In this document: in pieces, positions 61 through 55,889 of the stretch
How positions within the stretch are numbered: position 1 is the first letter of the stretch
Layout: every line of letters starts with the position of its first letter
Assembly (NCBI GenBank): GCA_048013815.1
Contig: CM106585.1
Coordinates: 11,532,001 to 11,596,000, forward strand
DNA from: Setoptus koraiensis
Lineage: Eukaryota; Animalia; Arthropoda
Reading direction: 5' to 3'
Length of the DNA: 64,000 nucleotides
Notes under the pieces: generated by a model
The model's input: the letters and a program-made list of their open reading frames with translations, nothing else
What the model was told of the DNA's origin: nothing
Database searches by the model: none
Made by a program: the position numbers and the translations under genes

Positions 61-118
61 ATAAACTGGCTAACGGACAAACTGGCTAACGGGTAAACTG
101 GCTAACAGATAAACTGGC
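61..118. repeat. 16-bp tandem repeat (~3.7 copies, ATAAACTGGCTAACGG-like)
   Basis: ataaactggctaacgg / acaaactggctaacgg / gtaaactggctaacag / ataaactggcgg read directly. Confidence 0.85.
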
Positions 119-519: not shown

Positions 520-570
520 CCGCTGAAATTGTTAGAGACTCCGCCGAAATTGTTAGAGACTCCGCTGAGA
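520..570. repeat. 21-bp tandem repeat (~2.4 copies)
   Basis: ccgctgaaattgttagagact followed by ccgccgaaattgttagagact and ccgctgaga; produces the SAESLTI repeats of the spurious ORF 203..595. Confidence 0.8.
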
Positions 571-885
571 TCGCTGAGGCTGGCCGGCTGGCCAAAATTA
601 CTATTATTAAAAATGACTAATGATGCTAATCTATTCAATTTTTGCATACGCTTTCCCCTATTTCTTCCTTGTTGTGCCGCCGTTGTTGTCGGTTGTGCTG
701 CCGTTGTGGTCGGCGATTGTTGGCAAACAGCGCACTGACAACTCTCAAACGGTTTACATCAATTTACATACAGGGCCGTCACTCGGGTCGTGATCATTAG
801 CGATTGACACAGCCGGCCAATAGCTGGCTTGTTGCTCGCTTGACGGGACAACAACAACAACAACAATCGATCGACAGTTGGCGTC

Positions 886-3800
886 ATGTTTTCGTCGTTG
901 CAGGGCGGCGGCCCGTTGCAACAGGCCAACGGCGTGCCGGGACACGCCGGCCAGACGGGCAACGGACAGCAACAATCGTCGTCGGGCGGTCTATTTAGCA
1001 AGTGGTCAAGCATATTCACGCTGGGCATGGCGAGCAGCAGCAGCAGCAGAGAATCCGATTGCGTCGCCGATTACGCAAACGACAACAACAACAACAACAA
1101 CAATGGCCGACAACAGTTTGCCGACGCCAACCAAGTCGCCGACCAGCACCACAAACTGGTCACCGAGCAGCGCCTCAGGTTGTTGCAACAACAGCAAGAC
1201 GAGCTCATCAGATGCCACCAGTTGCAATTGGAGGCCATGGCCATGGAGCACGACCAATTGATTCACCAGAAGGAACAATTAAAGCAGAGCTTGCAGGCCC
1301 AAAGTCAAGTCATACAGCAAGTGATACAACAATCAGCGAATCAGCAAGTCGCCCCCGCCGGCAAGCCCGTGGTCAAGGTGAGCCGCAGGAACAGCGCACA
1401 TTTTACAGCCAATTTCGTGCACAATGGTCAGTCGGGTCAGCAGTCGACAATCAGTCAACACCAGCAACACTATCAACCGCATCACGTGCAGGCGGCGGCC
1501 GCCGCATTGTCGCCCTCGTACCCGTGCCCGCCCATCGTCGACATAAAGTCGGGCATGGTGTTCAGCAGCAGCAGCAGTCAGCAATGGGGCCGCCATCAGC
1601 CAGCGGGCTACTCGACCACACTGGCCCATCCGCACAAATCCCGGCACAGAGTGCCCAGGCAAGTGGACGCACAATTCACTACAACAACAAGTTCCGCCAT
1701 GTTCGCCCTGGCATCGGGCACCGCGTCTGCCTACGGGAGCGCCGGCCCGTCCATGAGCGCCAGCCAAACGATAGGCCGCCGGCAGCGCAAGGGCTTCGCC
1801 GAGGCGGCACACGCAGCCGCCGCCGCCAGCTTCAACGATTGTCTGGCGGGCCGCGGCCGGCCCGTCAAAAATCAAACCCAACCGCAAAATTGCCTCGCCG
1901 GGGCGCCCGGAAACGACGGGCCGCATGCGCCCGCGGCGCAGGTCACAGGCAGACGATCCGTCAACAAGGTGTCGTCGTCGCGAACCATTAGCGCCAACTA
2001 CAATCCGCACGCGGTCACCCGGACAAACCACCGCCAGGCGGCGGCGGCCGCCGCAAACAACGGATTACAAGTGTCGTCGAGGCAGCACGTGGAGGCGATA
2101 TTTTCGCAGCCGACGACCGCGCTGTCGGACACCGCGGCCGCAATGGAGGGGCGTGACGGCGACGACAGCGAGCACGAGCACACGAACATGACCACAAATG
2201 GAGATTATTTGCACGTGCAAACTGGCGGCGATCGTGCCAACGGGATGTCGGGCAGCATGTCGGAATTTTCCGCCGATTCGCTGCGACGGTCACTGCTGGC
2301 GGGCGCCACAGGTACCGGCGGTAACAGCAAACACAAACAGCGAGCCAGCGGCAAGAGGACGCTGGACACGAACAACAACCACATCATGACAACAACTACC
2401 ACCACCACCACAGCCACCACCAAGTGTCAGTCGCTGCATTGCGTTGCGCAATTGGCGCCGGCGGCCCAGTGCGGCGTGTCCGCATCCGCGTGCGGTAAAT
2501 CGGCGCGACACCGGTACGGACAGTGCGATTATAACCAATTAATTGGCACGCGGAGCAGCGTCGACGTTGCGTCACTGTGCTCGGCAGGTGAGTTGCGCCA
2601 GGGCACAGGTGAGGTGGGTGCAAGTGACACCAGTGAGACGACAATCGCAGTGACTAACGAGCTCAGGCTGGCCTACAGAGCGGGCAGCCAGCGGATGCTC
2701 AGCAGCCAGCCCCGCCTTGCGGTGCCCGCGATGCCGCCCCATTATCTGACCATGGCGCCGCGCTCGGGCGCCGCCAGCAAGAAGCGCGCCCACCGGGCCG
2801 CCTCGACAGCCGACGAGCAGGCGACCGTCGATGCGCGGCCCACACTCGATCCCATAGTGGGGCCCATAGTGATCAAGAGCGGCAAGAAGAAAACCGTTAC
2901 GGGCACCATTGCGGCGAGCGCGGCGCTACCGGCCACGCGCCTGCCCAAGCGATCGTCGGTGTCGTCATGCGACGCGTCGTCCGCGTCCGCGTGCGCGTCT
3001 ATGTCGGCCGCAGCGGCGCCCGACTGCCCGGCCAAAAGGACCGCGAGCGTGTCGGCTGGCAAGGCGGCCAACAACCCGGGCACCGGCCCGGCTGCGCTGC
3101 CCCGGCTACCCAAGCCGGTGCCGCCGCCCGTGGTTCCACTGTACCGAGAGGTCGAGTTACAGGCGGCAGGGGGCGACCTTGTGGATGAGGGTGGCAGCAA
3201 TTATAAGGCGGCAGCTTATCAATCATGGGCGACCGACAAACAATTAAAGGTGTGCTTCGGCTCGCCCGAAACGCAGCCCGACGGCCGTTATAATAATAAC
3301 AACAACAACAACAACAGCGGAGATAATCGGGGCCAGTGTTGCTGTTGCGCCGAAACAACGACCGGCTCGGGTAAACAGGGCCAGCTTCCTGCTTGCAGCG
3401 CCGATTGTCGCCGCGCGCACGAAAACAGCACCAAGTCGGCCGGGCCGGTGGGCGCGCGGGAGCCCGCGCGCAAGGGCAGCGCGGGCGGCATATTGTCCTA
3501 CTTGAAGAGCCAGCTATTACCTAATCGGCTCATTAACATTAATACCGCCACTGGTAGCGGTAGTGGTAGTGGTAATATTGCAAATGACGATAACGATCAA
3601 TCTGTGATGTGCGATTATAATGAATTGAGTGCGTTAAATTGTGCACGCGACGACGCAAAATTGTTGTCGTCTATGCAAATTTTGTTGCCCGTGTCTAGCG
3701 GGCACACCGAACAACCGGCCAACGCCATCTATGATGTGCCCAGCGACAACTCTCAGTCAACGGGCACCGGCCCGACCAACGCGACTCCCGCTGGCGCCCG

Positions 3801-6303: not shown

Positions 6304-8430
6304 CCGCTCAAGTGTCCTCAATTTGATGGCATCCAATCCGTTGCCCAATATCCGACGCCATCCAATCCGTTGCCCAATGTCACCCAAGCCATGACAGCGA
6401 GCACACAATGGGCAATTTTGCGCTGGCGGCCAAATTATTGTGTCACATGACCGCCGGCCGTTATATTATCATGGCGCAATCAATGGTCACTGTATCATCG
6501 CGCAGCCATGAGCGATCATGCCGGGCACTTCCGGTTCTGCTAACACTGCTCATTGTCGTCTACGCACACACACACAAACTGACTAGTGGGCACAGTGAGA
6601 CTCACTGAGTGAGTGTACTCAGCATACCGAGTAGTAACTGCGTTGCTGCGTGTTTTGTTGCGTCACTCAATCAACTGCGACTAGCTAGCTAACGGTTGTT
6701 GCGAGCAGCAGTGGGGGCGCAGCAGCGTAATTAGTGGCGCTACTTACAAGTTGTTAGTTGCGTCATCGCTTGCTTTTTTGCTAGCTCGCCGTTGGCCCGT
6801 TGGCCCGCTCGCTCGCCGGCTGATTAAGATGGACGAGCTCGGGCCGGCGAGCCGGCCCGAGCGACTCCAGTGGCACCCATTGTCATGCCTGTCGTAGGTT
6901 GCAGTTGTAGCGGTGCGGCTATAAATTAACAAGTGCTCTCGTGTCGGCCCTAGGCCGGCCCGGCCCCAACAGCATCAATCATCGAGATTACACTGGGCCT
7001 GCCAGCGTTGAGGGCCCCAATTTGGGGCGCTTGCATTCGCACAGCGGAAAGCGCACAGCGGATGGGTTAATTTGGGCAACAGCGAAGCCACGTTAGTGTC
7101 AGTGCTGTGCGAATGGCAGCGCAATGTCGTTGCGTGCCGATATCGCACAACCACTTGTCGTCGTCGTCGTCGTCTGACATTGTGATCGCTGGCCACCTAT
7201 CGATAATCGCACACAACACAACACTCTACATACATACACGCCGCAATGATTATTATTAAATTATTTTCGGCCAGCGCCACTCACGGGGCCCCAATGTGAT
7301 TATCCGCGGCCTGTCGACAGCGAGCCAATCATGCCGAAACAACAAGCAACAACTTTAACTGTCGCGCACTGACACACTTACAGTTTAAACGCGCCACCCG
7401 CTAATCGGCGGCCTCACCTCAGGTGAGTCACCTGGCCAGTCATCAGCACGATGCTAGAATAACTGGCCAGTGATGGGCCCCCGTCTTTTCGCTGGCCCGC
7501 GCTGCCAAACACCAAGCCCGCTCACAAGCGTACATCTGCATACATCGAGATGTAAATATCGAGATGTCGAGTTGTTTCGCCAGGATTGCGTTTAAAACTC
7601 GCTAACAAGATCGCTTGCTGCGCGGGCCGCCAATTTGCCGCGCGAAAGCGGGGCCCCGCGCAAAAGCTGAAGCTTGTTGTGCGCCAGCGGAGGCCACTGA
7701 AAGCCAATATTACTATGTAATATTGCGACTGATTAGTAGCGCCACAACAAGCAACCGCGCATCCCGGTGTCGTTGATCATCAATCAACGACATTGCGTTT
7801 ATTGGCATGGTTGCGATAAAAAGTCGCCTCAAATATAATTCCGCGCATAATTCAAATTAATTTATTCGCATGGCTCCATGTCGCCAACAGTTAATGTCCC
7901 GTCGGCCGTCGACACACTTGCCGGTGCCATTGACGGGCCGCTGAGCCATTGGCTTGCCAATACGACAAAAGCAGACAAATGGCCGCGCCACATCATTTAT
8001 CACTCGCACCAGTTTTAACCGGGCAAATAACGGCAAATAATTTAACGGCTAGGCTCTTGCCGGGCGTGTGTGTGCGTACACAAACGGTCTCGGTATTGTT
8101 GTAAATCTGTCCCGAGGCGCACGACAGACACACTTGTGATGGCTTGAGCGAGCGAGCGGGCCCCATTATTACATTTCTCGTGGTACCATGCGTGCCTATT
8201 GCGTATGCGCCATTACCCGTACCCATACTATTACTCGGGCGTGATAGTATAAACAGGCTCGCTGGTAATGTTAGCTTGGTATGCAAACTGCTGCTGTATG
8301 CAAATTGGCACGTGCAAATTGCATTGTGCACGTATGGGCGCGCTAACAAAATTGTAAATGAATGATCATCATGTAATGATCACAGATTAAAAGGCGCCAT
8401 CTATCACCAATGGGCAAGCGATTTGATTAC

Positions 8431-32739: not shown

Positions 32740-35700
32740 TTAGAAATAATTGGTAGCCTCGTGAATTTGTTGTAGATCAGATAATATACGATCTGTGGTT
32801 GTACCAATCTTTTTTGTTATCTCACTCTTTTCTGAAACCGATAAGCTCAAAAATCTGTATATAAGATCTCCATCGAGGATATTCCTACATGGGTTACTTA
32901 GTTCTCTTCGGGCCTGCTTAATGGCTCGCCAAGCTCGTGGATTGAGGCCTGCGTTATGAGGTAGCGCATTGGTCATGTCGTTTTGTAACATCAGCAATCG
33001 TCGATAAACTTTCTCCGACACTGGTAATAAAAATCCTATACCGCCATCAAGTGTGCAAAACATAGTTACATGCTTGTTGCGACTTATCTCTGACTGAATT
33101 GGATCATTTGTCAACGAGCGCGGTATCCTCGCCCTCAGTCTGCAAAAACTATTGATGTGAGAGCCCAAGTGATAGTCTGCAACTCGTAGTAATTTCGTAC
33201 CACCTAGACTCTCTCTCATCTCAGGCTTGTGGGCATAAATGATGATGTTCTGATCGGCGTCCGACAAGACAAAATTCAAAATTGAGTTATCTATAGCAAA
33301 GTCGCAGCTATAAACTTCCAGAGGCCTTGTATCTCGACTAACTAGGGATAGAGTTCTAGTCTCTTGCTGATATCTTAGCAAGGATACAGATTTACATATA
33401 TCGCCAACCACTATTAGGTTTTTAACACTAATTGCGCAATTAGTATATATTTGGGTGTCAATAAATGCTATGCCTACCAATTGATCTTCTTTCAATTGCC
33501 ACAAGTATATTTTTTGACCTACAGCACTCAATAGAAGCCCACATACTTGACACAACGTTGATACCGGTCCTTTCTGCTCTTGACAATAAACTTTTTTGAT
33601 TTTGTTCTTAGTCAATGGTTTGTCTGGCTCTGGCACAACTTCAATCAAATCCAGTATCCAAATTCGTCCGCGATTAGAGACATCTTCACCATAACAACAG
33701 ATTGTACTCATGGCAATGTAACCTTTCAATCCGCTCGAAGTACCTTCAGAAGCTAACATGACGTTCTTTAGTGAAGTCACATGCTCCCATTCATCCAACT
33801 CTATATCAGCGTCTGCATTTTTATAGCGGAGAAAATAAAATCATTAATATCTACGATTAAATTCAAGACTAGACACAAAAGATACTTGTTAGATAATATG
33901 ATAACTAAGATAACTAACCTGGTACAATATCCCAATCTTCTGAATCAAAAAGTTGCAACTTGAATTTTTCTTTAGTCGGAGGTATGTAACCTTTCTCTCT
34001 ACGCAAAGGTTCGATCTGTTTGCTATCAGGATCTCCACCAGTCTTGACAAGTTTCTTGCATGGCTCTGGCTCACTCGTGACAACACAAAAAACTTTTCTC
34101 TCCACATGATAATTTATGAAATGAACAGTCTTTTTGATATTGATTTTACGCATCGGCCAATCTGTATCGTAGTTAAGTTTGGGATCAAGTCGAGATACCC
34201 TCAACTCGTCGTTTTCGTTATAATAAATGAATCCTTGAGGGCATTTCAGATCATTGTAGGGAGTGAAGCAATATACTGCTCCATCGGCGGGCATTTCATG
34301 AGATCTCAACTGTCCTCTGTGAGTCATTATGAACCAATGCGGCCTAGGTCCACAGAGGAATACACCATCAAAACCATTTATATTTCGGAATGACTTCAAC
34401 CAATGTTTTCTCCTACTCCATCTGTTACGATCAGAACTAGATCTATCTTGCACTGACCTCTGCTCGTGGATGTATTTCTGTTGCTTTCGTCCAGACTTAT
34501 CATTGGTTATGGATGGCTTAATTATATTCGATCCCAAACGAATGTCAGTTGCCTGTATTGTACTCAGAAGTAGTGTCTGTATTTTTCTAAATCTGATAGA
34601 TAGATGACCTTCGATGAAAGTGTCGTGGTACTCGAACGCTTCATACACAACCAGCTCGGTTTCGAATCTAGCGAACAGAGTTGGTCTACTGTTGAATAAA
34701 CCCATACCATCTACCAAGATTTCTTTTGTAGCTGGAAGTTTCGCATCAGTGTGAATACTAGGATCATTAGCGAACACTTGCACATTGTCAATCAATACAT
34801 TGGCAGCATTGGGAAAATTTTTGATTAAATAGACCAGTTTAAAATCAGGGACGCTGTAAATTTCGAGTATCCCACGTTCATCCACTATGAACAACCAGTA
34901 TCTTATATTGGTTTGTTTAGCATCATGAAGAGTATTATATATTTTATCGTCGACCGAAGTTGAATTGATATCATCAATATCACCTTGATCAACATTGTCA
35001 CCGGTTTCATCATCTGTTTGTGCTCGTTCAGTTTCTAGATGTTGTTCAGAGGGCTTTGTTTCAGTTCCATATAATAGCTCGTCTTCATCTTCATTCAATT
35101 GGCCAGAGATAAGTGCAGAAAGCGCATCACTTGCAGATGTTTTTGTTTGCTCTCTTCTAGGAGAATTTTGAAGATTATCACTGTTCGTTTCAGGCGCTGC
35201 CATCGTTGGAACATTTTCATCACAGCCGTATATATCAAAGTCGTCTAAATTTGAACCCTTGTTGAATGGATCATCGAACACTATACGTTGATTGTCATTC
35301 TCCACTTTTTGTGAGCTACTCTTCCTTTCACCAGAAAATTTGAAAAGTCCACTTGTGTCTCGGTATAGACACATAGCGACTATTCTGGGCCTACCGGAGT
35401 TTTCTACTTGTTTAGATAATTTAAGTATGGCTTTACTTTTGGATGTAGGAAGAGCTGGTGTTTTGCGCAATTGATCCCCCTCTAGTAATTCAAGATAGTA
35501 GATGGAACCGTTCCTTGATAGCAAAACTATATGCGGGTCAGCCAGAGATGCCAGATACAGCTCAGATTTATCAACTCCTTCCAGTCTTATGAATTGTAGC
35601 TGGGTGAGCCCGTCTAACAGTCGAACTCCAGAGGGGCACACTTGTATAGTTAAATTATCTTTACCAATGTTTCCTGCCAGTATAGTGGGAGTTTTAGAGT

Positions 35701-38380
35701 CGAAGCCGCTAGAACCCAACTCTTTAATTTCTTCGCCTAGTTGATATATCATTGTAGAATTTTCTCGACTAAGTATTAAATGCGCATGTGGATTGTAGCG
35801 ATAACGAAGTTGCTTGATGGATGACAGATCAGCTTGATCAGTGTGTTTGAGAGGTTTACCCCCATCCTCAACTGCGATACAATTTTGAGCGTCTTCAGAA
35901 TATGAATCCGTGGTGATATCAACAAATTGCTCAGTCATGCTAGTCTTGGACGAACAAACTGTCCACATATCATAGCAGCCATGCAAATCAAAAGTATCTA
36001 AAATCTTAGGTTTTATAGTCCTTTGATAGACGCATATTGAACCATCTTTATCGTGTCCAGCGGTTGTGATCAATTCAACGTATGGATCTTTAGCATCATG
36101 CGGCAACGTCTCTGAAATTTTCGGTGCTTCAGCATAACACATTCTACCGGCTGGGCTTGTACAGGTAATTTTATCACAATAGTCTAGATGATAATAAGTT
36201 GATGGCTTATTCCTATCATCATTGGCATCGTTCGCATTTGGATCCCAGCCAAATGTTTTCAATATTTTAGTTTGGCTTCCTGGTTCATCGTCTTTATGGT
36301 TTTCGCCAAGCGCTAGATGATTGTCATGGCATTTCTCATTTTCTAGTTCATCACCTTCTTTATTGAATCCGTTGATGTTACTAAACAAATTTTGATCTAT
36401 ATTCTGATTTTCTTGGTCGGAGTCGATTAAAATCTTCTGTTTCTTCGTGGGCGGACCATAAAGTTCGAATTCTTCATCTTCAAGAGGCTGTTCCTTTTCT
36501 TGAGTTTGCAAGTCACCAAAGTTGTGCTCATCGGATTCGTTTGGAACAATTGATTTGTCCTGTATCGATCCGGATATGTCACTTGTTTCGTCTATTATCT
36601 GAGCATCCATCTTAGGTAGTCCGTTATCTGCATTCAGATTCATTTGTTTTTCTCCATCCATGGAATCAGTAACGGATTCTTGTTTATTCAGGCTGTTGAC
36701 CTGTGATGGAGAGCTCTCATCGGAGGAGATCTTTGACACTTCATCATGTTTGAGGATAGGTCTCTTAGATATAGGTCTCTCGGTGAATTTTAATAACACT
36801 GAGTCGCCGAGGTTCGATCCAAGAAACAAGAAACTATCTTCGCATATAGTAACACAGCTTGTTTGGACACATGATGCGACCTTATCAAAATGAAAACTTC
36901 TTATACAACGCATACCATCATTGAACAATGTTACGATATATATGTCACCATCTTTCAACAAGATCGCGATCCTATTAGAGCTAATGAAAGTGGCTTGACT
37001 AACATCTAAACTTATATTAACATAATCTTGTTCTTTTAAAGGAAAGGCTGTACTATCTTTTGTAAAATTATTTAATGATACACCATAAGCTGGAACGGAT
37101 TGGTTAAGGTAGATAAGCTCATTTACTCCCAGTATTACAACACCGCCTATAGGTTTAGGTACAGGTAAGATCCTTTGACAATCATAGGGTAAATTATTAA
37201 CAGTCCATATTATAGGTTGTAAACGCTGTTGAACATTTAAAGATAATGCTACCATTGAAAATGTGTCCTGGCGAACGGCTACACGTCCAGGCCATGTCCT
37301 AATCGGTTCATATAATATAACAAGAGTGGGTTCGTAATAGTTGTGCAAGAATTGAATATCGACTATATTATCGATCTTTTCACCACATAATTCTTCACTA
37401 AGATCAATTTTATAGCTGGCCATGACAGGCGACCTGAAAGCATTTGGCTTAGTGGGCGTTAGAGCAACAGCTTGTTTAGTTTGCAATTCGGGTTGAGCAA
37501 CATCAATATTTGAGGTAGGCAAATTATTAAGGTTACTTCCCGGTTCAGATTTGATGAATCCTGGGATTGTTGTTGGATTGTCCACGCCAATGGGCTCTGG
37601 AATGGTTACACTCCTATCTTCTAAGTCGGCTGCATTATCTGCTGCTGAGTTATTATTGTCGGAATTATCAAGAGATTGTTTTTGCCCTAAAGTTTGAGAG
37701 GAGTCAAGATCGGCTACTTCTTGGATGCTATCTTTATAGAAAGGGATTACAACGACATGCCTCCCATATACCAACATTGCCGCACATCTATCTTCTGGAT
37801 CTATTCTTACGAGTGGGTCATTGGTATAATTGGTTGTATAGCCATCTTTCATGGATTCATCATCTTCAAAATATTGTAATGAAAGTGTTTTGAGATCGTG
37901 TGTGGTAGAATCGTATTGTACAATAGATAATTTTGCATCATGAAAGCTTATTACCAGTGAATCACGCTTAGAATCACTACCCAATTTAACGCTTCGCAAT
38001 GAGCCAACATTTCCATAAAGCTCAAAAGATTGGAGCGACTCTAATCGCACTTGTTGTTTCAATGGTTTGGCAGATTTTCTTTTGTTAATTGTCGGTGTTG
38101 ATGTTTGCGGTCTTGAATGTTTAGAATTAGCCTCATCATTGTAATTATCGTTTTTAATTTTCTGTTGAGTGTCGTCATCTTTAAGATTAACAAATTTTTG
38201 GCCATCCACAAGGGCTTCATCATCGTCGTCGTCATAACCTAAATATTTGACTATCCTATAAACTTGCAATCTATTCGCACCGGCCACAACTAAATTTGAT
38301 TCTTTATGGTTGTAGAAATTACAATAAATACTATGATTAATGCATGTTGATGGATGAGTGGTCCTACAAATGGAATACAT
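32740..38380 (-). CDS. CPSF1: Cleavage and polyadenylation specificity factor subunit 1 (CPSF160); exons 38380-33919 and 33812-32740 (1844 aa)
   Basis: N-terminus MYSICRTTHPSTCINHSIYCNF; motifs HDLKTLSLQYFE, RIDPEDRCAAMLVYG, GVFLCGPRPHW, KGPVSTLCQV, GLNPRAWR, LDGDLIYRF. Phase-1 intron 33918-33813 (GTTAGT..TGCAG, 106 nt) joins DIVP-D-ADIELDEWEHV in frame. Confidence 0.97.
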
Positions 38381-39455
38381 GACGGCGTCTAAATATCGCT
38401 GATAAAGTAAATTATCTCATGCATAAATTTGTTGGAAACCACAAACAAATAATAATAATAATATCAATAGTGGTAGTAGAAATAATAAATTAAACGAAAC
38501 AGATAGATAGAATTCATTTCATTTCATTTGTGCTATGTATATTTAAGGCTCCTCCGTATGATCTATCAATGTGCTTCTAGCTGACACCCCTAGAATACCC
38601 TTATAGTACCCGCACAATACCCTCTGCGTCGTGCATGTGCACTGTGTTGGTGCGCTGCCCGCTAGATCAAGGATGCGCGGAGTGTTATTAGTTTATTCAA
38701 CTATTGCTAACAGAATTGTAGCGCGCATTTCTAACCCCTCGCTTTCTTTCAAAAGAATCAACATGGAGCATGGTTGTGGGGGGGAGGGGAGGGAGAGATC
38801 TCGTGTGCATTGGCCAACAGTGGCTTGTAATAGATTCATCTGTGAATTTTCCCTGTATTGATTCACCAGCCGGCATGAAAATCAAGTAAACACGTGCATT
38901 TCAAGCACCACGGTGCCGGTACATCGCTGCCTGGCTAAAGCCTTGATTTTTACTTTTGAACTAAAATCTCTACGCCAGCCTTTCATTCCCCCACAGTTTA
39001 TTGATCTATATTCAAATATTTGGGAGGCGTAATTATTCGGATCATCACAAAACACATTATAGACCGTCCAATATCTAGCATTAGAGGGCATTGCATAACA
39101 ATAGAGGCGAGTTACTTCAGTTCTTCCTTATGCAACAATGAGGACAATTTGGACTTGGATCTACTATTCTACACATTTGATATTTTTTACAAGGCCGGAA
39201 TGAAGCCTGTAGCATTAGGCACCATCTTGAACTTTTCGAATGTTAAAATTCCTGTAAACAATGCGAACGAACAGCAAAGGGAATCTTCTCGAACAATTAC
39301 AGCCAAATCTGAGACTGACTCGAACGCTCGTGAGTGATTGCGAATCTATAGATTTTATGACAGACAGATTTATTGAGCTTTTGTCTGCTATCGATGCGTC
39401 GGATAACTTGCTGTGTCTTCCATCCTAGTATAAAGCTTGAGTCAGTTCGACGCGT

Positions 39456-40482
39456 TCATTGGGAAAAATTTTGTGTTTGTACCGCTTTGAAATTGATATC
39501 CGTCTCAATCGAGTTGAATTTTTTGAGGTACTCATTGCGCTCAATGACAACCAAATTGGCTAAAGATTCATTCTGATGACTCAAGGCCAACTTGAGCGCC
39601 TCTTGAAATCTAAAGAATTCCGAGTACAAGTTTACTGCGGCTTCTAAGTTGCTATTTTGTTGCATCAGTAACATAGCAGATTGTCGCGGGTTGCCATTCG
39701 CAGGACTGATTAAGAGGGAGATTTCGGCATATCGATTAGAGTCGTTCTCTTATGCTAGCTGACCTATGAGGGCGTCCAATTGATCAATCATGTCCACTCT
39801 GCCTAGTTCAGCGAAGCACTCTCCAGCCACTTCCAGAGAGCCCCTTCTCAGGTCCATTGCCATGTATGCGAGCATCTACCATATTGCGATGGATTCATTA
39901 TCGTTGAGAGCCTACTTGAATTCAACAACCTGTTGGCCAAAGCTTTATCTATTAAGTTATCACCATACAACTCGTGAATAATCTCAATGATGGGATTCAC
40001 TGTAATAGTGAACTTATTCAAACAATCCGTCTCTATATTGATGAAACTGCCAAGAAAGTTTGTGATCTTGCTATAGACAATCTTCTCCATATTTTGGGCA
40101 TGTTTTGGAGAATTCTTCAAGAGGATATTATTCTGTTCTCATGGTTTACTTGAGTATAAATCCACACGTATCAAGCAATTGTTCTCCATGGAATTGCCTC
40201 TGAATGCCTCATCGAGATTAATGTACAAATGAATAGTGTGATTGTTCTTGAGAGCAGCCAGAATCTTTCTAGAATTGTTCCAGAGTATAGATTTGCAATT
40301 CGTGTCTATTCTGATTGGCTCCAAATGATCGAGATTGCTCATGTTTTGATTTTTGCCAAAACCTATAATGTGTAGTTATCGTTGTTCACATCTATGAAGG
40401 CTAATATCTTATAATTGTCATCAATTGTTTGATTGTGAAAGACAACAAATTGAACCATGCGTAGACTGTGATATTGAGTCAT
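39456..40482 (-). pseudogene. IFT80: Decayed C-terminal half of an IFT80/CHE-2/Oseg5-like intraflagellar transport gene
   Basis: Colinear segments resembling IFT80: KILAFIDVNND (cf. KIAFIDKNRD), SILWNNSRKILAALK (cf. LAWNDTCNILCGL), ITVNPIIEIIHELY (cf. ISITPYPAILHEY), IAIW*MLAYMAM..AGECFAELGRVD (cf. MWACLAAMA..AEIAYAAIGEID), FQEALKLAL..ERNEYLKKFNSIETD (cf. WERALELAV..YRQKFLETFGKQETN). Stops at 40139-41, 39876-78 and 39750-52, plus two frameshifts. Reference motifs are recalled from memory of the human protein. Confidence 0.75.
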
Positions 40483-40484
40483 AC

Positions 40485-40680
40485 TAGTTCCCTTGATCGT
40501 ATCGATTGTCATTTTGGCCTCGGAAGCCATTGATGTCGATACCGAGCTTGGCATATCCTCTATTGTCAAGGATCTGCTCAGAAAGCAGTAATTGGAATGG
40601 ATTTTCCGTTTTTGTTAGCACATTTTTTTTTGTTGATAAGACGAAGGAATCTGGTCCCATTCAATAAATCATGAACTGCT
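40485..40680 (+). pseudogene. Degenerate copy of the Frizzled TM4-TM5/ICL3 segment (source ~45057-45285)
   Basis: 40485-40535 matches 45057-45107 at 50/51 nt; similarity resumes after an internal deletion (ttgataagacgaaggaatctg..tcaataaatcat). Confidence 0.92.
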
Positions 40681-40724
40681 CCAAGTACCAGCAGCACTAC
40701 TGTTATAAACTCACCATTGTAGAT

Positions 40725-41170
40725 GCAAGATTTGTGGTTGCGCAATTATATTTTGTTATTTTATTATTCTCTTGGGTGGACAACCTCAAAAATCTGTCTA
40801 CATGATCTCCATTGATTATACATGTATTCATAGATGCTTGCTTGATGGCCTGCAAAACTCGTGAACTCCGACGGATCGCATGAGTCATGTCGTTTTGTAA
40901 CATCAGCGATCGTCTATTAACTTTTTTCAATACCGCTAATGAGAATCCTATGTCTCGGCAGCGAAAGTGAGCGAAACATAGTTGCATGTTTATCGCGACT
41001 TTTCTTTGACTGTACATGAGATCATTGTTGAACGAGCGCGGTTTCGTTGCGCCTAGTCTACGAAAACTATTGGTGTGAGTTCCCCAAACTGATAGTCTGC
41101 AATTCATAGTAATTTTGCACCACCTAGACTCTCTTTCACATCTCAGATTTGCTGGCCACCAATGATGCGA
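40725..41170 (-). pseudogene. Degenerate copy of the CPSF1 3' coding region (source ~32780-33250)
   Basis: Shared blocks such as gtcatgtcgttttgtaacatcagc, ctcaaaaatctgt and tgatagtctgcaa..gtaatt..caccacctagactctct. ORF 40703..41107 keeps LMLQNDMT and DRFLRLS but is otherwise scrambled. Confidence 0.92.
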
Positions 41171-41184
41171 TCTGTTGTGATAAT

Positions 41185-41360
41185 AACTAGATCTATCTTA
41201 CACTGACCTCTGCTCGCGCATGTATTTATGTTGCGTTCGTGCAAACTTTTCATCAATTATGGATGACTTGATTATATTTGATCTCGAGCGAATGTCAGTT
41301 GCGTGTATATTCTACATCTGACAGATCGATGACACTTGACGAAAGTGTCCCGGCACAGCA
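41185..41360 (-). pseudogene. Degenerate copy of an internal CPSF1 segment (source ~34435-34630)
   Basis: 41185-41216 matches 34435-34466 at 31/32 nt; continues through cgaatgtcagttgc and gaaagtgtc. It abuts the previous fragment, so ~1.2 kb of source sequence is missing between them. Confidence 0.9.
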
Positions 41361-41499
41361 ATTAATTTCGAGCCGGCTTCGTTCATTCACTAGGAGGCAC
41401 CAGTTTCTCATTTTGTGTGTGCTCTGGACATACCAAACTAATGTAAAGCATCAAGTTGTAGCTTGTGTGAGTTGAGCATCCGGTCAACTTTGACCAATG

Positions 41500-41905
41500 A
41501 TGAATGAAATGAAAATATCGAACGCACTTTAAGCAGCTAGTGATTGGCGCTGCAACTTGAGTAAGCCAGTGGCCCAAAGTTATACGAGTTGTATATTCAA
41601 GAGTTTGGCCGAGTGCAATTGAGGCATCGTCCAGCATAACACATGAGTGAGTTAGTGAGCATGCACATTTAATAGGACATGTATGACGCACCATCGACGG
41701 TTGTTCCGTCGAGCACAAACATTGATCATGAATTAGGGAACAAGGAACAAGCCAGTTATTGGGGGTTCCAATGAGCAGCATACTTATCAAACGCATGCCA
41801 TCTCAGCCCCACGGTGCGAGTGTCTATGCCATCGGTGGTTGGCTGTGTCGGCAACAGTCTCAAGTTGGATATATTAGTGAGCGTCAGCTTATGTTTTCGA
41901 AATTC
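41500..41905 (-). pseudogene. Probable decayed N-terminal WD40 region of the IFT80-like gene
   Basis: Frameshifted WD-like text VGLRWHAFD / MLLIGTPNNWL, then HTCPIKCA and LTQVAAPITSC, at spacing similar to IFT80 IDFHWFPK / FVLTSSDGKF / HCGAVLAG / LAQQGTPVYSV. The similarity is weak and judged by eye. Confidence 0.4.
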
Positions 41906-43477
41906 GAATTGTTGTCTGTCGGGCATTCTAGCCCAGCGCGTGTTTCTGTGTGTGTGTGTGCTCAGGCTGCGTCAGGTTCAATAAACGAACGCCTCTCGTA
42001 TATACACTTGATTCGATTTTATCGAATGCGCACAACACATAGAGAGAACAACGAAGATAATCCGCGTTTATAACAAAAACATGTAAGCAACAAAGGCGTA
42101 GCAAGTGCATCGCGTCCCGCAAACTCGGGCCCGCTGTTGTTTGCGGGCCGCTGCAACACATCGAACAATATATAAGAATATAAGAATAATACCATTGGCA
42201 CAATTTCAAGCGACAGCTCGTGCGCCTCGTCACTATATATCGTATGGTGTATCGATGCATGCGTGGACGGACCAATGCGCAAGCGCGCACTTTGTGTGTG
42301 CGTGTGCTTGTGTGTGGTTCGGTTGTTCGGTCGTTGGGTTGTTCGGCTGTTCGGCTGCCTGGTCTGGTCTGGTGTGACCCTAGTGACTCACAACTGGTGA
42401 GAGAGGCTGGGAGCTGGCCAACGCGCGGCGTGTACGCGCATTCTCTGGTGATTAAAATGATGTGCCGCCGATGATGAACGACAACAACAATTTTGTTCGA
42501 TCGTCGATTTGATTCGCACGTTCACTATAAACAAATTCTACTTTCTCTCAGCAAGCAGCGAATAGCGCATTAACAGGCAAGAGCGTTAAATCGTCGCCTT
42601 GTTCTCTCAACCTGACGACTGTCCCATCTCTATATTAAACATTAAATGTAAAATATTTCATTCTATTCCATGTGCTCAGTGAAAATCTCATCATCGTTAT
42701 TATTATCATTATTATTATTCTAATCACCATCATCTTTATTGTTGTCATTGCTGTTAATACCATTTATTATTATTATTATCTATATTCTCATCTTGGCATC
42801 GTGGAAGAGAATATCTGGCCGCTAAATAGTAATCCAAGACACAGGCTTTCCATCCACGCACATTCATGCATTGTTGGCCGACAATAGCGGATAAGCGAAC
42901 ATACACATACACACACACACACAGCTAATTATCATCAAGTGACCATGATCGAACCAGCATCTATACATCAATAGAATAGATTCGAACATCTCTCTATTGA
43001 TTATAATAGCTCAACCACAAACAACCTGACACGACACACTTGGCCGCCACAACAAGCGTGCCAATACTCTAACAACAGCCATAGGTACGACGGCCACAGA
43101 TTGACCAGCTAGTCAATCAGTGTCACTGTTATGATCAACCGCCACCATCCTTAACTAGTGTCATCTTGCCAACAGTGACCAGATATTTTTATATCCATCA
43201 CATGTCATCAGCAGCTTTTGTCATCATACACGCACCATTTTCTACCAATTTTCTACAAATTTTCTACCAATCAACCATTTTCTACGATTGACACGCACAC
43301 ATATATATACATTATATTTACACAACTATATTTGCAACAAATATTTACACATACATATATTTCTATAGTATGATATCAATATTGCTACAAGATTTCATCC
43401 ACATCCAAACAATTTGATAATAATATAATTATTCATATATTTGCACGATACTTGCAACACTTCTTCAAGACAGAATC

Positions 43478-46231
43478 ATGCGGCAATCAATCAGTATTCC
43501 GACCTTATTTCAGGACAAAACATCACATTCGAAAGCAATAATACTACTACTACTATTATCCATAGTCCAACTTAGTCATGCGGTCCAGTCGTCAGACGAC
43601 GATCCATTCAGTGATCCCGATTACCAATGTGAAACTCTCACCTTCGTAGAATGCAGAAATTTTGGCTATAACACAACTAGAATGCCAAATGTTTTTGGCC
43701 ACCAAAATCAAGAGGAAGCCAAAACTGTTGCCATTCAATTGCTTTTACTAAACGAAACAAAATGCAGCGACGAGTATGTATTTTATATATGCCAAATGCT
43801 GTTTCCTGTTTGCCTAACTGAAGGCGCTAGCAAATATGAAAAAGCTGTCCTACCATGCAGATCTATGTGTAATCGTGTATATGATAGCTGCAAACAATCC
43901 ATCAATGAGGCTAAGAAATTTGTTAAAAATGAATGGCCTCAACAGTTAGAGTGTGATAAGCTAGAAGTTGATAATCCAGATTCTGGTGTCTGTCATGATC
44001 CAAATTATAATAGAATGAGACAGCAGCCAACAAGCAATCAACAGCCATCAAAATTAAATAATCATCAGCGCTCTCAAAATAAAACGAAGCCAATCAAACA
44101 AACCCCTGACGAATACCAAAACAATCATAACGGGGAGTGGAAAACTGTTCTGGCGCCTTTTGAACCACCTAAACATCCTGTAGATATCTCTATCGATAGA
44201 TCTCCTTTAGATATTTCAAAATTTATTAGTCCTCAAACGATCCATACTGGTCCGAGCAATACATTTCTGGATCATCGGCCTTCGCCTCGGCCAATTGCGA
44301 ATACCGATACCTTCGAAAATATTGATCATCCTTATAATCGTCAATCGATCCAAGAAAAGCACTGTGGTTGTTTCTGCCGTCCACCATTGGTGCCGATCGT
44401 GGATGCTGTAGATCGGAGATCCCACTATCGAGTAAGAGTAGGCTCTTTGAATAACTGCGCCTACCCGTGCTCCCTGAAATATAGAAAACCAGCTCAACCT
44501 TTGAAGTCGATTGAGCAATCAAACTCATTATTCTTAACTGGGCAAGAACAGCAAAAAGTGAATGACGTGGTGTCTTTCCTTGCATGGACTTGTCTAGTTT
44601 TGACTGGATTTACCATAGTTACTTTTTTGAGTGACATTCACCGATTCAAGTATCCAACCCGATGCATTGTGTTTCTTTGCGCTTGTTATTTGCTAGTCTC
44701 ATCAGGATATCTATTAAGATCACCAATCGACACGTCAGGTGATGCTTCTGACAGTGTTGAAGAACTAACCACATCTTCGTCGAGCCTATCACCAACCATG
44801 TCACCTTTGCAAACAGTTTTAGAACAACAGCAACAACAACAAAGACCCTTCTACTGTTATCAGAATCTGGCAAGATATCCTGTCAGCGGAACTATACAGA
44901 TACAATGTCTCGCTACGTTTTTCTTGACCTACACCTTCATGATGGCGGCGAATGTATGGTGGATGATATTTGCCATAGTCTCTTTCATGTCGAGTTTAGG
45001 TTGGGCCCAAGAATCACTATCAAGTTACTCACAATGTTTTCATCTCACAGCTTGGTTAGTTCCCTTGATCGTATCGATTGTCATTTTGGCCTCAGAAGCC
45101 ATTGATGGCGATATCGAACTTGGTATGTGCTCTGTTGGCAACTTAGATCTAGGGAATCTACAAGGATTTATTATCATACCTCAAATAGCAGCAATAGGGA
45201 TAGGTTTCCTGTTTTTGTCAACACAATTTATTTTGCTGATAAGACGAAGGAATCTGATCCGACTCAATAAATCATCAACTATAGCCAGTGTCAGTAACAG
45301 TCCACCTTCATCAACTCAGATATCACCCACTGATCACATGCATGATGAGAACTATCAAGCCAATGCGTCCATCAGCAAGCAGACATTAACAGTTAATGTG
45401 GGAAAATCTGGCGGATTCATAACTTCAGCAGCGGATAATTGTCAGCTAAGATATTTGGAAAAATTGGATGGATCAATTTTGAGAATTGTACTCTTTGGTC
45501 TGTTATATTTTATACCTATGCTCACGTTAGTGACCACTCTTCTATATGACCAATACTCTAGACCCATCCGTGAACGTCAATATGTTTGTCCTTGCTCACA
45601 GTCAAATCAATCAGCAGCATCGACCACATCCTCGTCATCGTTTAGTCAGTTTTTACTCTCTAATATCAGTTATTATGACACGCTATTGGCGAGGCACATT
45701 TCAATATTGAGCGTAGGTATTGCAGCATCACTGTGGTTGTGTTTCAATATGAAAACTTTCAGGCAATGGAGGAAGCTGGTGAGAAGGATATTCCGTTGCT
45801 GTAGTGATACGACTGACAATTACGACTATATATTAAGATACGATGCTGACGCAATCTGCAATCATAACAATCTCGTAAATCAAAATCAACAAGAACATTT
45901 GAGACAGCAACATTTGCTCCAGCAACAGTCGATCACAATCAATCAATACGATGAAATAAACACATTGGGCCGTTCCAACATGACGCCGAACAAGTTACCA
46001 CCTTATAATTATCGTTTACCTCCTGCCTCAACAGCGTCCACTTCTAGAGTTGACGGCCTGACCCATACAACTAATTTACACCGGCAATATCCCTGGATGG
46101 GATCAGGACCATCTCATAAACACAATAATTCAAGTTCGCAGTCTTCATCTGGGCGAAGTCGTGCCCAGAGTTACATAAATAGGGACTTATCTGGCCACAA
46201 CTCTCGTCGAGATCAACAACTCTGTCTGTGA
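43478..46231 (+). CDS. Frizzled-family Wnt receptor, divergent, intronless, 917 aa (possibly Fz2/FZD5/8-like)
   Basis: Signal peptide; CRD CETLTFVECRNFGYNTTRMPN..LPCRSMC..WPQQLEC; linker CGCFCRPPLV; 7TM with RFKYP, WW, FHLTAW, DGD..GMCSVGN; KTxxxW motif (KTFRQW). Confidence 0.95.
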   Translation: MRQSISIPTLFQDKTSHSKAIILLLLLSIVQLSHAVQSSDDDPFSDPDYQCETLTFVECRNFGYNTTRMPNVFGHQNQEEAKTVAIQLLLLNETKCSDEYVFYICQMLFPVCLTEGASKYEKAVLPCRSMCNRVYDSCKQSINEAKKFVKNEWPQQLECDKLEVDNPDSGVCHDPNYNRMRQQPTSNQQPSKLNNHQRSQNKTKPIKQTPDEYQNNHNGEWKTVLAPFEPPKHPVDISIDRSPLDISKFISPQTIHTGPSNTFLDHRPSPRPIANTDTFENIDHPYNRQSIQEKHCGCFCRPPLVPIVDAVDRRSHYRVRVGSLNNCAYPCSLKYRKPAQPLKSIEQSNSLFLTGQEQQKVNDVVSFLAWTCLVLTGFTIVTFLSDIHRFKYPTRCIVFLCACYLLVSSGYLLRSPIDTSGDASDSVEELTTSSSSLSPTMSPLQTVLEQQQQQQRPFYCYQNLARYPVSGTIQIQCLATFFLTYTFMMAANVWWMIFAIVSFMSSLGWAQESLSSYSQCFHLTAWLVPLIVSIVILASEAIDGDIELGMCSVGNLDLGNLQGFIIIPQIAAIGIGFLFLSTQFILLIRRRNLIRLNKSSTIASVSNSPPSSTQISPTDHMHDENYQANASISKQTLTVNVGKSGGFITSAADNCQLRYLEKLDGSILRIVLFGLLYFIPMLTLVTTLLYDQYSRPIRERQYVCPCSQSNQSAASTTSSSSFSQFLLSNISYYDTLLARHISILSVGIAASLWLCFNMKTFRQWRKLVRRIFRCCSDTTDNYDYILRYDADAICNHNNLVNQNQQEHLRQQHLLQQQSITINQYDEINTLGRSNMTPNKLPPYNYRLPPASTASTSRVDGLTHTTNLHRQYPWMGSGPSHKHNNSSSQSSSGRSRAQSYINRDLSGHNSRRDQQLCL

Positions 46232-51462: not shown

Positions 51463-54400
51463 TTATTGACCGTCGTCTCGATTCAATGAATTGTTTTCAT
51501 TGTTATGCTTCGATGCCACCGAAGCCTCTTCTGTCTTTTGTGTAGACGAGCTCTTGCTTTTAGGAGTATCCACTCGATATGAGTCGCTTGTTCGTCTCTT
51601 GAATAAGAATTTGTAGACACCCAATCTCTGTAACATGGGTTCTAAGATTGACAATTTTGATCTTTTGCACCCAAAAGCTATGAATATAAATAAACCTTGT
51701 AGTGTATTCAATATAACAAATAGATACCACAATATGTCACTATCTGCAAATGATGCAACAACTCCGGTCAGCCACGTTAGGCCCATCATAGTTGAGAGAC
51801 GCCAATAGAGACGATAGTCCTTAGATACCGAGGCCAACACGATGCTCAACTGCTGCTGAATCGGCCTATTGCACGCGTTCCCTGCTTGCCTTGATCTTTC
51901 TTTCTTGGTTTCGTCTTGTTTTTCCAATACTAAAGGCAAGGTAGACGAATTTGATATAGTTATTGAAACTCGCTTCGTCGTACCATCGTACTGATCAGAC
52001 TCATTGTTTTTTGCTCGATCCCCGCTCTTCGAGGTGGTATCGGGTGCGCTGGTGATAGCATTTGAATTGTTGGTTGCCATTTCTTGCTGAACATTATGTA
52101 GCTTGTTGTTCGAATCCAAATCTTTGTCTCGCATGTCTCTCCAATGAGCCAAATCGGTAATTGTACTTTGTATTGTAAGATTATTGTCATATACATTGGA
52201 TTTATTCTCTATTGCACAATTTTTCTCGTTTCCCTTGTTAGGCTCAGTGTGATTTGGTGAATCGATCGACGCGATTTGATGTGATCTTCTGAAAATTTGT
52301 CTCAGAAGGCGTTTTAGCTTGTCGGCAAAAGTAGATTTAATCTCATCTACGCTTGTTGATTCGGAACTTTCATTACTCTCTATTACGACAGTCGGCATAT
52401 CTCTCGAACCTGCAGGTATGCCTCTCAACCGCTCCCCAGGAATATTGTATTCGAGAGTCGTTGTAGATGACGAGGATTGTAATGAATACGATGAAATAGT
52501 ACGGTTCTTTTTCATGTCATACCGTTTGTTTGAAGAGCCTGCTTTCTTGCTTGGACTATCAATCGATGAGATTAAGTCGCCCTTTTTGGCGTATGGTTGT
52601 CCTCTAGAAGACTTTGTTGAGGTCATTATCACCATAGCACTACTATGAATGAAGAATAATAAATTGAACACCATTATGAGGGTAACAGGCAAACCAAAGA
52701 ACAATGCTAGACCGCGTCTATTTGTGAACCAACACGATCCCTGGCGCTGTCCAAATCTCGGTTTGTAGTCATTAATAATAGTATCAATGATGGTGAGATA
52801 GAGCTGCTTCGGTTTGGTATCACTGAAAGTATCCGTGCCATCTGTTAGTTGCTGCGAACTGCTAATATTACCCTGATTAGGCTGATGGTCACCAGATAAC
52901 GATTGTGGTAGGAAATCCACATATGTAGCTGTTGCAACAACAGCGCCGGATATAGCTAATGAGTAAATCATGTAAATTAGGAACCTTTTAGATTGTGCAT
53001 GTATTACTGGGCCGCGCAAATGACATGTAGCCAAACGAAGCGTACGCCAAACATCGAAGGATAATAAGAACATCCAATTGAATGCCATGAGAAAACAAAA
53101 ATAAGTGCCGATAGCAACGAATACACAAGCATCGTAGTTTTGATTGATTGTGTCCAATTGCTGACTACTGAGAAAAAGAACGTAGGCCCCTAGCAGCGAG
53201 GTAGATAAACAAGCTACCCCTCTTGATGATAATGAATTGTGGCCCGCGGAGTCCATGGATCCTTTTCGATTTCTACCAGTGCACCAGACACAGGTTGATG
53301 ATATATACAACAATAGGAAAAGTGTCAGGCTTGTTATAGAGATGACAAGTCCCATAGTGGTTATCATGGCCATGATCGGCTTGAATTTGGGAGCCAAATC
53401 TGTCTTAAACGGAGTGCATATCAATAGTTTGCCACCTTTATCTGAATCTAACTCATAATGGCCTGGCTCCAAAGTCAAATTGTATAGTTCCACGTGCGCC
53501 ATCGTTGTATTGCCCTCTGGTGTCGTTCGATTGATCAATTTAAATTGCGACTTATCAATATAGATTTTACCACATTCGTTGAATGATAGGTTCGCACTAA
53601 CAAAAGGTTGAGTAGCTGATGTTAGATTTTTCGTACCATCATTCAGCCGCTGGTCTGATCCAACAGTTTTTTGTGGCGATAACGTAATAGCTGTACTATC
53701 TGGATTACTGTTTACTACGATTGGTATCTTCGATTCATCGATAGAACGCGCTGTATTTCCTTTGTTATTTGTTAGGCTACGATTGGCGATACTTGATGCA
53801 GAATTAGCTGATTTTTTTTGCGTATCTCTTTCAACGGTAAGAAAAGGCTTTTGATTACTAATAAATTCAGAGGAGTCACTCGCTAAAATAGAACTCGCGG
53901 TCGTAGAAGTAATGTCATGTGTATCATCGAGTGTTGGAGTCATTCCTGTACTGGAATCACTGAATTCTGATTCTTCATCGAAATCGGTGGATGTATACTT
54001 GGACATCGGAGGTGATTTAGTAAAACCAAATTGATCTGTTGAGGGGTCGATACGTACATTTTGGCCGTCGTTAAGGTTTGTTTCGCTAGAGCGAGTCTTA
54101 TATATGTTGTCGGCTTTCCCAGTCGAGTTTACCTCTGCTTTTACCGTATCATCGGATGGTGAATTAATTAAACGATTTTCCTCCAATCCGAGTTGATTCG
54201 CTACACATTTTCCTTCTTGGAAGCGTTGATTCAAACCACAAACAACGTGACGACATGTCATGAAGATCGGATCATAAATTTGGTCGGCGCTCTCGCACTG
54301 ATGCACTATTCCTACTTGTTGGTCATCATGCGAAGAGCCGTAAAGATCAAATAAGACGCTGAAGGAACCTTGTAAATTGGTTGAAAACGGATTCAAATCG

Positions 54401-55889
54401 GGTGATAAACGCCGGCCCTGGTTATCATCGGGTAATGTTTTGCGCATTTTAGGCTCGCAATGTACACTGAACTCGTTATTGCAATGAGCACACGCCAGGT
54501 TTCTGTAGGCAATATCGCTAGTCTGGCTGTAGACCAATGCTTGATACCCCATGTGACATTCATCAGCCAGAGTCTGATTGATCTGACTCGATAAATTCCT
54601 AGATGACGTTTGATTATTCTGTAGAGTTGATGGATCTAACTGAGCCACATGGCATCTATCTATCACATTCGCCCGACAGAATCTTATCATATGCTCAACT
54701 GAGTTCGGTATCACAGGCTCAAACTTACAAATACGATCATTTATGCTATGCTTTTTGGGATCGATAACAGTTTCATTGTTGCTATCTGATCCTGTGTCGG
54801 TTGATAAAGTCATATTCGAAGAATGATTTGGCTGTGAATGTGGACTGTCGGAGCTGGTATTCTGTTCCGTTCTGTTGCTGATTGGTATGTCTAGGAACCA
54901 ACTTTGCAGAGATTCTGAATATTTCAATATTTTTCCCTTGCTCAAGTGTAACAAATCGAGCAAGGCATTTCTATCATCTTTCGTAACATCGTAGTTGCAA
55001 TCGAGCACAGGGGACCAGTATATTAATTTGGAATGGTTTAGATTGATAGGGTTGCACTGTAAACAATAGGAATTAGCGTAGGTTATGCCACTCACAATGT
55101 CTGTGATGTGCATCATAAGTCCAAGAGGGTCTTGAAGCTGGGGTACTGTATCAGATTGGATTTGAACTACATCCTCTGTATCATGTCTACCAGTGGCAAA
55201 TGATTTTTCCTTAACCATTTTGATGTGTTCACAGTTCTCCTTGATAATTTTAGCATCTTGATTAGCTCTGCTAGGATGGCTAATGTTTAGTAAATTTTTA
55301 CTCAGCCATTCGGCTGAGCATGAAGCCTTAATGTAGACATCGCCGAAGAGACCAGTTTGGTGACAAAACCATTGAGATCTAATTCGCCTCAGATCGAATT
55401 CATTTTTCCTCTCCGTTGATGATATTGCGAATTTAGAATCAGCGCAGCAATCGTCGCTGAATAATGTAAGAAAAAATTAAAAAATTTTTGGTAACATGTT
55501 GGGATTCAAAGACAGAGCAAGTTTCCAAATTTGCATACTTACTAAACTCTACATGCTTGATCACAAGTGCACGATTGTTTTTTGGGTTCCGATTCTAATA
55601 GTCTGCTTCTGATGGTGGCACGACACGAGCGCCTCTGATGACATTTATCGGTATAAACTTGTTCCGAGTTAGTAGTGATACGGGGTGGGCCTGATCTTTC
55701 TGTGTTATTTTTACTTATTGATATATCACGAAGTTTTGCAGGTTGAGTATTATTCAAATCGTTCAGTGGCATAGCCATAATAGCACAAATTATGATATTC
55801 ATGGTGGCGATTATTATGCACAGTTTACCAGAAGAGTTTTTGCCTTCAAAAGGCCTAATTAGGTACAGTCGTTTAGTGTAATAGTCCAT
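51463..55889 (-). CDS. Family-B/Methuselah-like GPCR with N-terminal somatomedin-B-like domain; exons 55889-55543 and 55456-51463 (1446 aa)
   Basis: Phase-2 intron 55542-55457 (GTAAGT..TTCAG, 86 nt) reconstitutes SCTCDQACRV-Y-DDCCAD (SMB-like). Cys-rich ectodomain SGITYANSYCLQCN and YRNLACAHCN; 7TM motifs FNWMFLLSFDVWRTL, CWF, GLTW, LNTLQGLFIF. The exact start codon is uncertain. Confidence 0.88.

Follow-up and report, generated by a model that had tools for sequence, protein, structure and literature searches.

The spacer between the divergently transcribed genes for CPSF1 and Frizzled of the eriophyoid mite Setoptus koraiensis contains a patch of about 2.6 kb that is put together from broken pieces of Frizzled, of CPSF1 and of an IFT80-type gene. 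The patch was studied in a stretch of 64,000 nucleotides (NCBI GenBank assembly GCA_048013815.1, contig CM106585.1, positions 11,532,001 to 11,596,000 of the forward strand), which we call the window; all positions are counted from its first nucleotide. The pieces, their sources and their junctions can be read directly, related species lack the block, a second copy of the IFT80-type sequence is present in the same species, and the pieces have lost more bases than they gained. We consider it probable that the block is a patchwork of dead partial duplicates specific to this lineage, and that the IFT80-type piece is a later ectopic copy. For the patchwork as a whole we lean slightly towards a two-layer origin as the best explanation, that is, a tandem duplication followed by the arrival of the ectopic IFT80 copy.

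Broken pieces of both neighbouring genes lie in the spacer

The window consists of intron-poor animal DNA. The spacer between CPSF1 and Frizzled has a length of 5097 bp and contains the whole patchwork (Table 1), with a core from 38861 to 41421 and an extent of at most 38751-41484. When the window was compared with itself by blastn, 40485-40677 (piece B) matched Frizzled 45057-45280 on the same strand (73%, E 3e-38), 40729-41167 (piece C) matched CPSF1 32790-33244 (72%, E 2e-61), and 41170-41308 (piece D) matched CPSF1 34420-34558 (84%, E 3e-38). All Frizzled and CPSF1 pieces have kept the strand of their source, and the Frizzled piece is found to the left of the CPSF1 pieces. This order and the retained orientations had been described in an earlier note on this DNA, and were confirmed by self-comparison with blastn and tblastn. 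The Frizzled piece and the CPSF1 3′ piece are joined tail to tail.

Along 2126 bp of CPSF1, pieces E, D and C keep the order of their source; 227 bp are missing between E and D, and 1175 bp between D and C. The only intron, that of CPSF1, falls in a deleted part of the copy. Small insertions and deletions within the pieces amount to six deletions with a total of 85 bp versus six insertions with a total of 13 bp. The arrangement of the CPSF1 pieces and this excess of deleted bases fit one longer copy that would have been eroded by deletion. Adjoining pieces are separated by just 0-14 unassigned nt.

In sequencing runs from three studies of the same species, contigs without any difference to the window cover 38381-40275, 40246-40514 and 40492-42686; the assembly may have been made from one of the three samples. 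The Frizzled/CPSF1 joint and the joints among the CPSF1 pieces each lie within one contig, and the IFT80/Frizzled joint is bridged by a contig of 269 nt that reaches only about 31 nt past the joint. An assembly artefact was rejected, because the junctions agree in the contigs from the three studies.

Table 1. Positions of the intact flanking genes and of the parts of the spacer within the window (positions 1 to 64,000).
Feature	Position	Strand	Evidence and remarks
CPSF1, intact	32740-38380	-	Source of pieces C, D and E; Pfam RSE1/CPSF1 propellers and CPSF_A
Ancestral spacer, left part (CPSF1 promoter side)	38381-38750		76% identical to sister spacer 1-358
Left-edge stretch, including a G-rich run	38751-38860		No significant match to sister spacer, CPSF1 or Frizzled
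Copy of DNA downstream of the source IFT80 gene	38861-39455	-	Presumably non-coding; no Pfam match on either strand
IFT80-type 3′ half, truncated and decayed: end of the second beta-propeller and tetratricopeptide repeat (TPR) tail, putative	39456-40470	-	Pfam; second copy
Filler of 13 nt at the IFT80/Frizzled joint	40471-40483		Match to the second IFT80 copy ends at 40470; Frizzled likeness begins at 40484/5
Frizzled piece B, codons ~527-609, inside the seven-transmembrane (7TM) region, with internal deletions	40484-40719	+	blastn, tblastn, three-way alignment with own and sister gene
CPSF1 piece C, exon 2 codons 193-336, ends 16 codons before the stop	40729-41167	-	blastn, tblastn, alignment
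CPSF1 piece D, exon 1 codons 1256-1327	41170-41356	-	blastn, tblastn, alignment
CPSF1 piece E, source 34859-34915, codons ~1159-1174	41364-41421	-	tblastn/tblastx hints and local alignment
Right-edge stretch	41422-41484		No significant match
Ancestral spacer, right part (Frizzled upstream side)	41485-43477		Common to sister; local alignment and blastn
Frizzled, intact	43478-46231	+	Open reading frame (ORF) of 917 amino acids; Pfam Fz and Frizzled; source of piece B

Related species have the spacer without the block

In a sister species represented by a public sequencing run, CPSF1 and Frizzled are arranged head to head with no IFT80 between them, on two contigs (L002 and L001) that overlap by 28 nt. 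The sister spacer has a length of 2598 bp, and the spacer of the window minus the core block has 2536 bp. Positions 1-358 of the sister spacer align to 38381-38750 of the window and positions 615-2598 align to 41485-43477. Nothing in the sister matches 38751-41484, and about 256 unalignable bp are found in its place.

Two further relatives, represented by contigs L004 and L005, have a CPSF1 that is 50-53% identical and carry a gene with an Fz domain directly upstream of CPSF1, at a distance of 2.0-2.6 kb. No IFT80-like sequence was found between CPSF1 and the Fz-domain gene, nor anywhere else on these two contigs. The neighbouring genes (L004:5622-7436 and L005:1187-2488, both on the minus strand) encode the cysteine-rich Fz domain, and neither Pfam nor tblastn detected a Frizzled 7TM part in them. 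The Fz-domain gene is probably orthologous to the Frizzled gene of the window. On L004, a gene with an immunoglobulin domain follows the Fz-domain gene, in place of the 7TM part. The neighbour in L004 and L005 may encode a receptor whose membrane part was lost, or may be another gene with an Fz domain. The neighbourhood of CPSF1 is different in Fragariocoptes and in L006.

The conserved right part of the spacer also bears on one of the pieces reported before. Four of the five fragments of the earlier note were recovered; the fifth, which the note took for a probable 5′ fragment of IFT80 (about 41383-41905), matched no Pfam family, and from 41485 onwards it aligns to the sister spacer. For 41485-41700 the local alignment to the sister spacer reached z = 14, and the blastn blocks extend up to 43425. 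The two edge stretches (110 bp and 63 bp) matched nothing in sensitive local alignment, and searches of the spacer with Rfam and for tandem repeats gave nothing relevant and no known RNA family.

Simple repeats of the AAT/GAT type or low-complexity tracts are present at 38448-38490 and 42687-42931. Contigs of all runs break there and loose ends pile up, and the two contigs of the sister likewise end in the tract at 38448-38490.

The IFT80-type piece has a second copy at another locus

Pfam detected the domain TPR_IFT80_172 (PF23387) at 39459-39749 on the minus strand, with 34.5 bits versus a cut-off of 25.6 (E 2e-8). This supports the presence of an IFT80 3′ half on the minus strand, as claimed in the earlier note. 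Upstream of the TPR domain and colinear with it, Beta-prop_IFT80_2nd (PF23335) was seen at 40142-40375 (minus strand) below threshold, with 15.6 bits versus 27 (E 0.007). From the projected end of the propeller (~40055) to the stop codon (39456-39458) there are about 200 codons. A short C-terminal tail of about 200 residues after the propellers presumably fits IFT80, unlike the long-tailed proteins IFT172, WDR19, WDR35 and IFT122.

IFT80 is a subunit of the intraflagellar transport (IFT) complex B and consists of two beta-propellers and a short TPR tail. The sequence in the window resembles it in the TPR domain, in the weak, below-threshold match to the second propeller at the expected place and in the short tail. 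It differs from an IFT80 gene in that only the 3′ half is present, without the first propeller and truncated at 40470, and in that this half carries two frameshifts and four in-frame stops. When a 97-amino-acid IFT80 piece was searched with phmmer against 1.8 billion representative proteins, no match was returned, the query being short and diverged, and phmmer with three IFT80 pieces against PDB sequences returned nothing meaningful. A feature search in Atlas pointed to second propellers of the general coatomer/IFT class of propeller-plus-solenoid proteins, and was not IFT80-specific.

A second copy of this sequence, with about 9% divergence in the coding part, was found in sequencing runs of the window's own species. 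It is represented by a contig with 508 nt on 39758-40258 (47 substitutions in 501 nt) and by contigs matching 40246-40470 (18 in 225) and 39487-39554 (9 in 68). A contig of 13.7 kb from this species resembles the window (85%) over 38861-39233 only, and its likeness ends at 38861. Because this contig has no match to 38381-38860, the second copy must be at another locus, and an allelic origin was ruled out. Past 40470 the second copy continues with sequence unlike the window, exactly where the window copy gives way to the Frizzled piece.

Compared to the window, the second copy has four insertions or deletions (+10 nt at 39935/6, +4 nt at 40375/6, -12 nt at 39700 and -3 nt at 40121). The +10 and +4 changes, whose lengths are not divisible by three, coincide with the two frameshifts of the window copy, and when just these four changes are applied, every IFT80 piece falls into a single frame with four stops left; frame-keeping of the second copy was judged from these changes and not at the sites of the four stop codons. 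The Jukes-Cantor distance between the two copies is 0.085-0.10 in the coding part versus 0.17 in the downstream flank (Fisher p = 0.002-0.008), values that are biased downward by the 85% likeness filter of the contig search. The lower distance in the coding part suggests that the coding sequence of the source IFT80 gene is under constraint by purifying selection, and we infer that this source is functional. On these comparisons we conclude that the IFT80-type sequence in the window is probably a truncated, decaying secondary copy, and that an IFT80-type gene would persist elsewhere in the genome.

The pieces appear to differ in age

At sites that differ between the window's own gene and that of the sister, the pieces side with the own versus the sister base at 26:18 (piece C), 20:2 (piece D) and 25:9 (piece B). 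Since the pieces mostly agree with the gene of the window, the copies appear to have been made on the window's lineage. The Jukes-Cantor branch lengths are 0.25 (0.19-0.30) for C, 0.19 (0.13-0.27) for D and 0.18 (0.12-0.25) for B, with overlapping intervals. The aligned spacer gives a neutral half-distance to the sister of 0.12-0.20, and the event that produced the Frizzled and CPSF1 pieces would be roughly as old as the split of the two species.

For the IFT80-type piece, the distance of 0.17 in the flank is spread over two neutral branches and corresponds to a half-distance of 0.085 ± 0.012. This value is smaller than the lower bounds given above for B, C and D, so that the IFT80 piece appears to be younger.

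These results bear on the history proposed in the earlier note, according to which a block of CPSF1, IFT80 and Frizzled was duplicated in tandem, large deletions then kept CPSF1 from one copy and Frizzled from the other, and the loss of IFT80 was recorded by its cut remains. The order and orientation of the pieces agree with this history, and the IFT80 piece is indeed broken. We nevertheless regard it as very improbable. IFT80 is absent between CPSF1 and its neighbour in the sister as well as in L004 and L005, which speaks against an ancestral block of this composition; the earlier note had itself named such an absence in relatives as grounds for giving up its history. The supposed IFT80 5′ fragment is conserved spacer, and the IFT80 piece does not share the age of the CPSF1 and Frizzled pieces but is younger. 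A second IFT80 copy that preserves the frame is present at another locus of the same genome, and this contradicts the reciprocal cutting of both IFT80 copies and with it a visible loss of the gene.

A tandem duplication may have produced the Frizzled and CPSF1 pieces

The junction of a tandem duplication predicts the tail-to-tail joint, the order and the orientation that were observed for the Frizzled and CPSF1 pieces; were order and orientation random, such agreement would be a coincidence of 1 in 8. We tentatively propose that a tandem duplication of the CPSF1-Frizzled pair gave rise to this layer, a step that we place just below even odds and slightly ahead of template switching. The part of the earlier proposal that invoked tandem duplication is hence viable for the order and orientation of this pair and unproven against template-switch repair, and the part that invoked reciprocal loss was given up.

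According to the two-layer account, the older layer (40484-41421) would be the junction of a duplication of about 10 kb with ends inside both genes, near codon 609 of Frizzled and 16 codons before the stop of CPSF1. The inner copies would have been born truncated and dead on arrival, and complete genes would have existed solely as the outer CPSF1 and outer Frizzled. Later deletions would have removed most of the inner copies. The younger layer (38861-40470) would be an ectopic 3′ half of an IFT80-type gene together with about 0.6 kb of downstream flank, which was probably pasted in during repair of a break in dead DNA. We infer this two-step order of the layers.

Several observations weigh against the two-layer account. 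Neither a second copy of the spacer nor further remains of the inner genes were found by blastn, tblastn or sensitive local alignment, so that only order and orientation of the pieces speak for a tandem duplication. The spacer is almost whole around one point, which is what the insertion of a simple patch predicts, and the duplication model needs two deletion ends within the same stretch of about 250 bp of the spacer. Selection that keeps the promoter side of CPSF1 and the conserved upstream side of Frizzled could explain these shared deletion ends. The branches of the pieces equal or exceed the neutral half-distance, and the duplication could thus predate the species split, the sister having lost it. 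The attachment points on the path between own and sister gene differ between C and D (Fisher p = 0.01; three-way chi-square p = 0.025), and therefore a single age for B, C and D is not secure. The earlier note had connected equal divergence of the Frizzled and CPSF1 fragments with one event; the overlapping branch intervals agree with this expectation, the attachment points do not. For the younger layer, the assignment of 39456-40470 as IFT80-type rests on one Pfam domain above threshold and on the architecture, and the way in which frame-keeping was judged as well as the downward bias of the IFT80 distances count on the same side.

As an alternative, the block may have been made by repair with template switching or templated patches, similar to microhomology-mediated break-induced replication (MMBIR) or fork stalling and template switching (FoSTeS), or by capture of multiple fragments. 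Copying of low processivity would have mended a break or a collapsed fork in the spacer, taking sequence from Frizzled 4.5 kb to the right and from three spots of CPSF1 6-8 kb to the left, with the distant IFT80 copied in the same or in a later event. This route would account for the single insertion point with the host spacer kept (2536 versus 2598 bp, with about 250 bp unalignable there), for the tight joints with 0-14 unassigned nt and for the lack of remains of a second spacer copy in the window. It also offers a natural explanation for the IFT80 piece, because three source loci contributed and one of them is distant. Template switching makes no prediction on the order of the pieces, and their order and orientation match the junction of a tandem duplication exactly. 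The colinear CPSF1 pieces and the excess of deletions explain the gaps without extra switches, and the younger age of the IFT80 piece makes a single event unlikely. Microhomology, which would be a trace of such repair, is unreadable at junctions that are 16-26% diverged. On this evidence we consider template switching somewhat doubtful as the origin of the block.

A mosaic that draws on several genes, including one at a distant locus, could also stem from a mobile element (a Helitron, a Pack-MULE-like element or transduction by a retro-element) that captured gene fragments and landed between CPSF1 and Frizzled. The edges of the block showed no terminal inverted repeats, target-site duplication or poly-A; the inverted or direct repeats seen there were chance-sized matches only, and poly-A was not found at 38861. 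No other copy of the mosaic at a likeness of at least 85% was present in any run. Moreover, CPSF1 and Frizzled, two of the three source genes, directly flank the block, which is not explained by an element that arrives from elsewhere. Capture by a mobile element is hence hardly to be expected as the origin.

Relation to known kinds of sequence

Two well-known kinds of sequence resemble the block, which is a new instance of such partial or chimeric duplicates and templated insertions. Partial or chimeric duplicates that are dead on arrival arise from tandem duplications with breakpoints inside genes, and have been described in Caenorhabditis and Drosophila. Like these, the block has pieces of two neighbours tail to tail between the intact originals, and the inner copies are incomplete and decaying. 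It differs from them in that about 10 kb would have been whittled down to 0.9 kb, in that the second copy of the spacer is gone and in that a piece of a foreign gene was added; the duplication would have to be deduced. Complex templated insertions occur at repaired breaks, by MMBIR or FoSTeS or by capture of multiple fragments at double-strand breaks. The block is similar to these in having several short pieces from near and distant loci at one point, few filler bases and an otherwise retained host sequence. It is dissimilar in that its pieces are old (10-30% diverged), have at least two apparent ages and, as far as they are local, all show the orientation of the source. The papers on eriophyoid genomes that were searched for cilia, IFT and pseudogene mosaics contained no mention of IFT genes or of such mosaics.

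The patch records sloppy duplication and slow deletion, not gene loss, and no function of it is demonstrated. No RNA sequencing run was shown to contain the patch. A false lead is removed, since this stretch gives no evidence for an ongoing loss of IFT80 or of ciliary transport machinery in the mite. The block is also a dated sample of neutral DNA from an arthropod genome that is among the smallest, and within this sample deletions outweigh insertions (85 versus 13 bp in small events, plus losses of 227 bp and 1175 bp). This excess of deletions is direct support, on a small scale, for streamlining of the genome that is driven by deletion.

It is conceivable, although we think it unlikely, that the block reflects an active habit of repair in a streamlined genome, by which breaks in dispensable DNA are patched with pieces of genes copied from both near and distant loci, and mosaic pseudogenes recur. 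If this were true, such mosaics could serve as neutral clocks for the rate at which deletion shrinks the genome. If other mosaics of the same origin exist in this genome, together they could reveal the repair pathway behind them.

The flanking genes and other features of the window

Both flanking genes are intact, as stated in the earlier note; this was confirmed by Pfam, by the splice sites of CPSF1 and by the uninterrupted ORF of Frizzled. CPSF1 has two exons, exon 1 at ~33919-38380 and exon 2 at 32740-33813, and a canonical GT-AG intron of about 100 nt lies between them (~33814-33918). The best named relative for this CPSF1 is the eriophyoid gall mite Fragariocoptes setiger. Compared to the sister species, protein identity is 89-98% for CPSF1 and 67% for Frizzled, and Frizzled thus evolves much faster than CPSF1. 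The length of Frizzled is 917 amino acids in the window versus 1065 in the sister (L001:2517-5714).

Far from the spacer, positions 1-8000 of the window have a G+C content of 55-62% versus about 40% in the remainder, and a strong AT skew (0.48 at 4001-6000). An ORF of 1805 amino acids inside this G+C-rich part (886-6303, plus strand) had no Pfam match. For an ORF of 1251 amino acids at 51463-55218 on the minus strand, the sole Pfam match was a short one to the secretin-family 7TM domain (PF00002, 33 bits), and its product may be an adhesion-type G-protein-coupled receptor.

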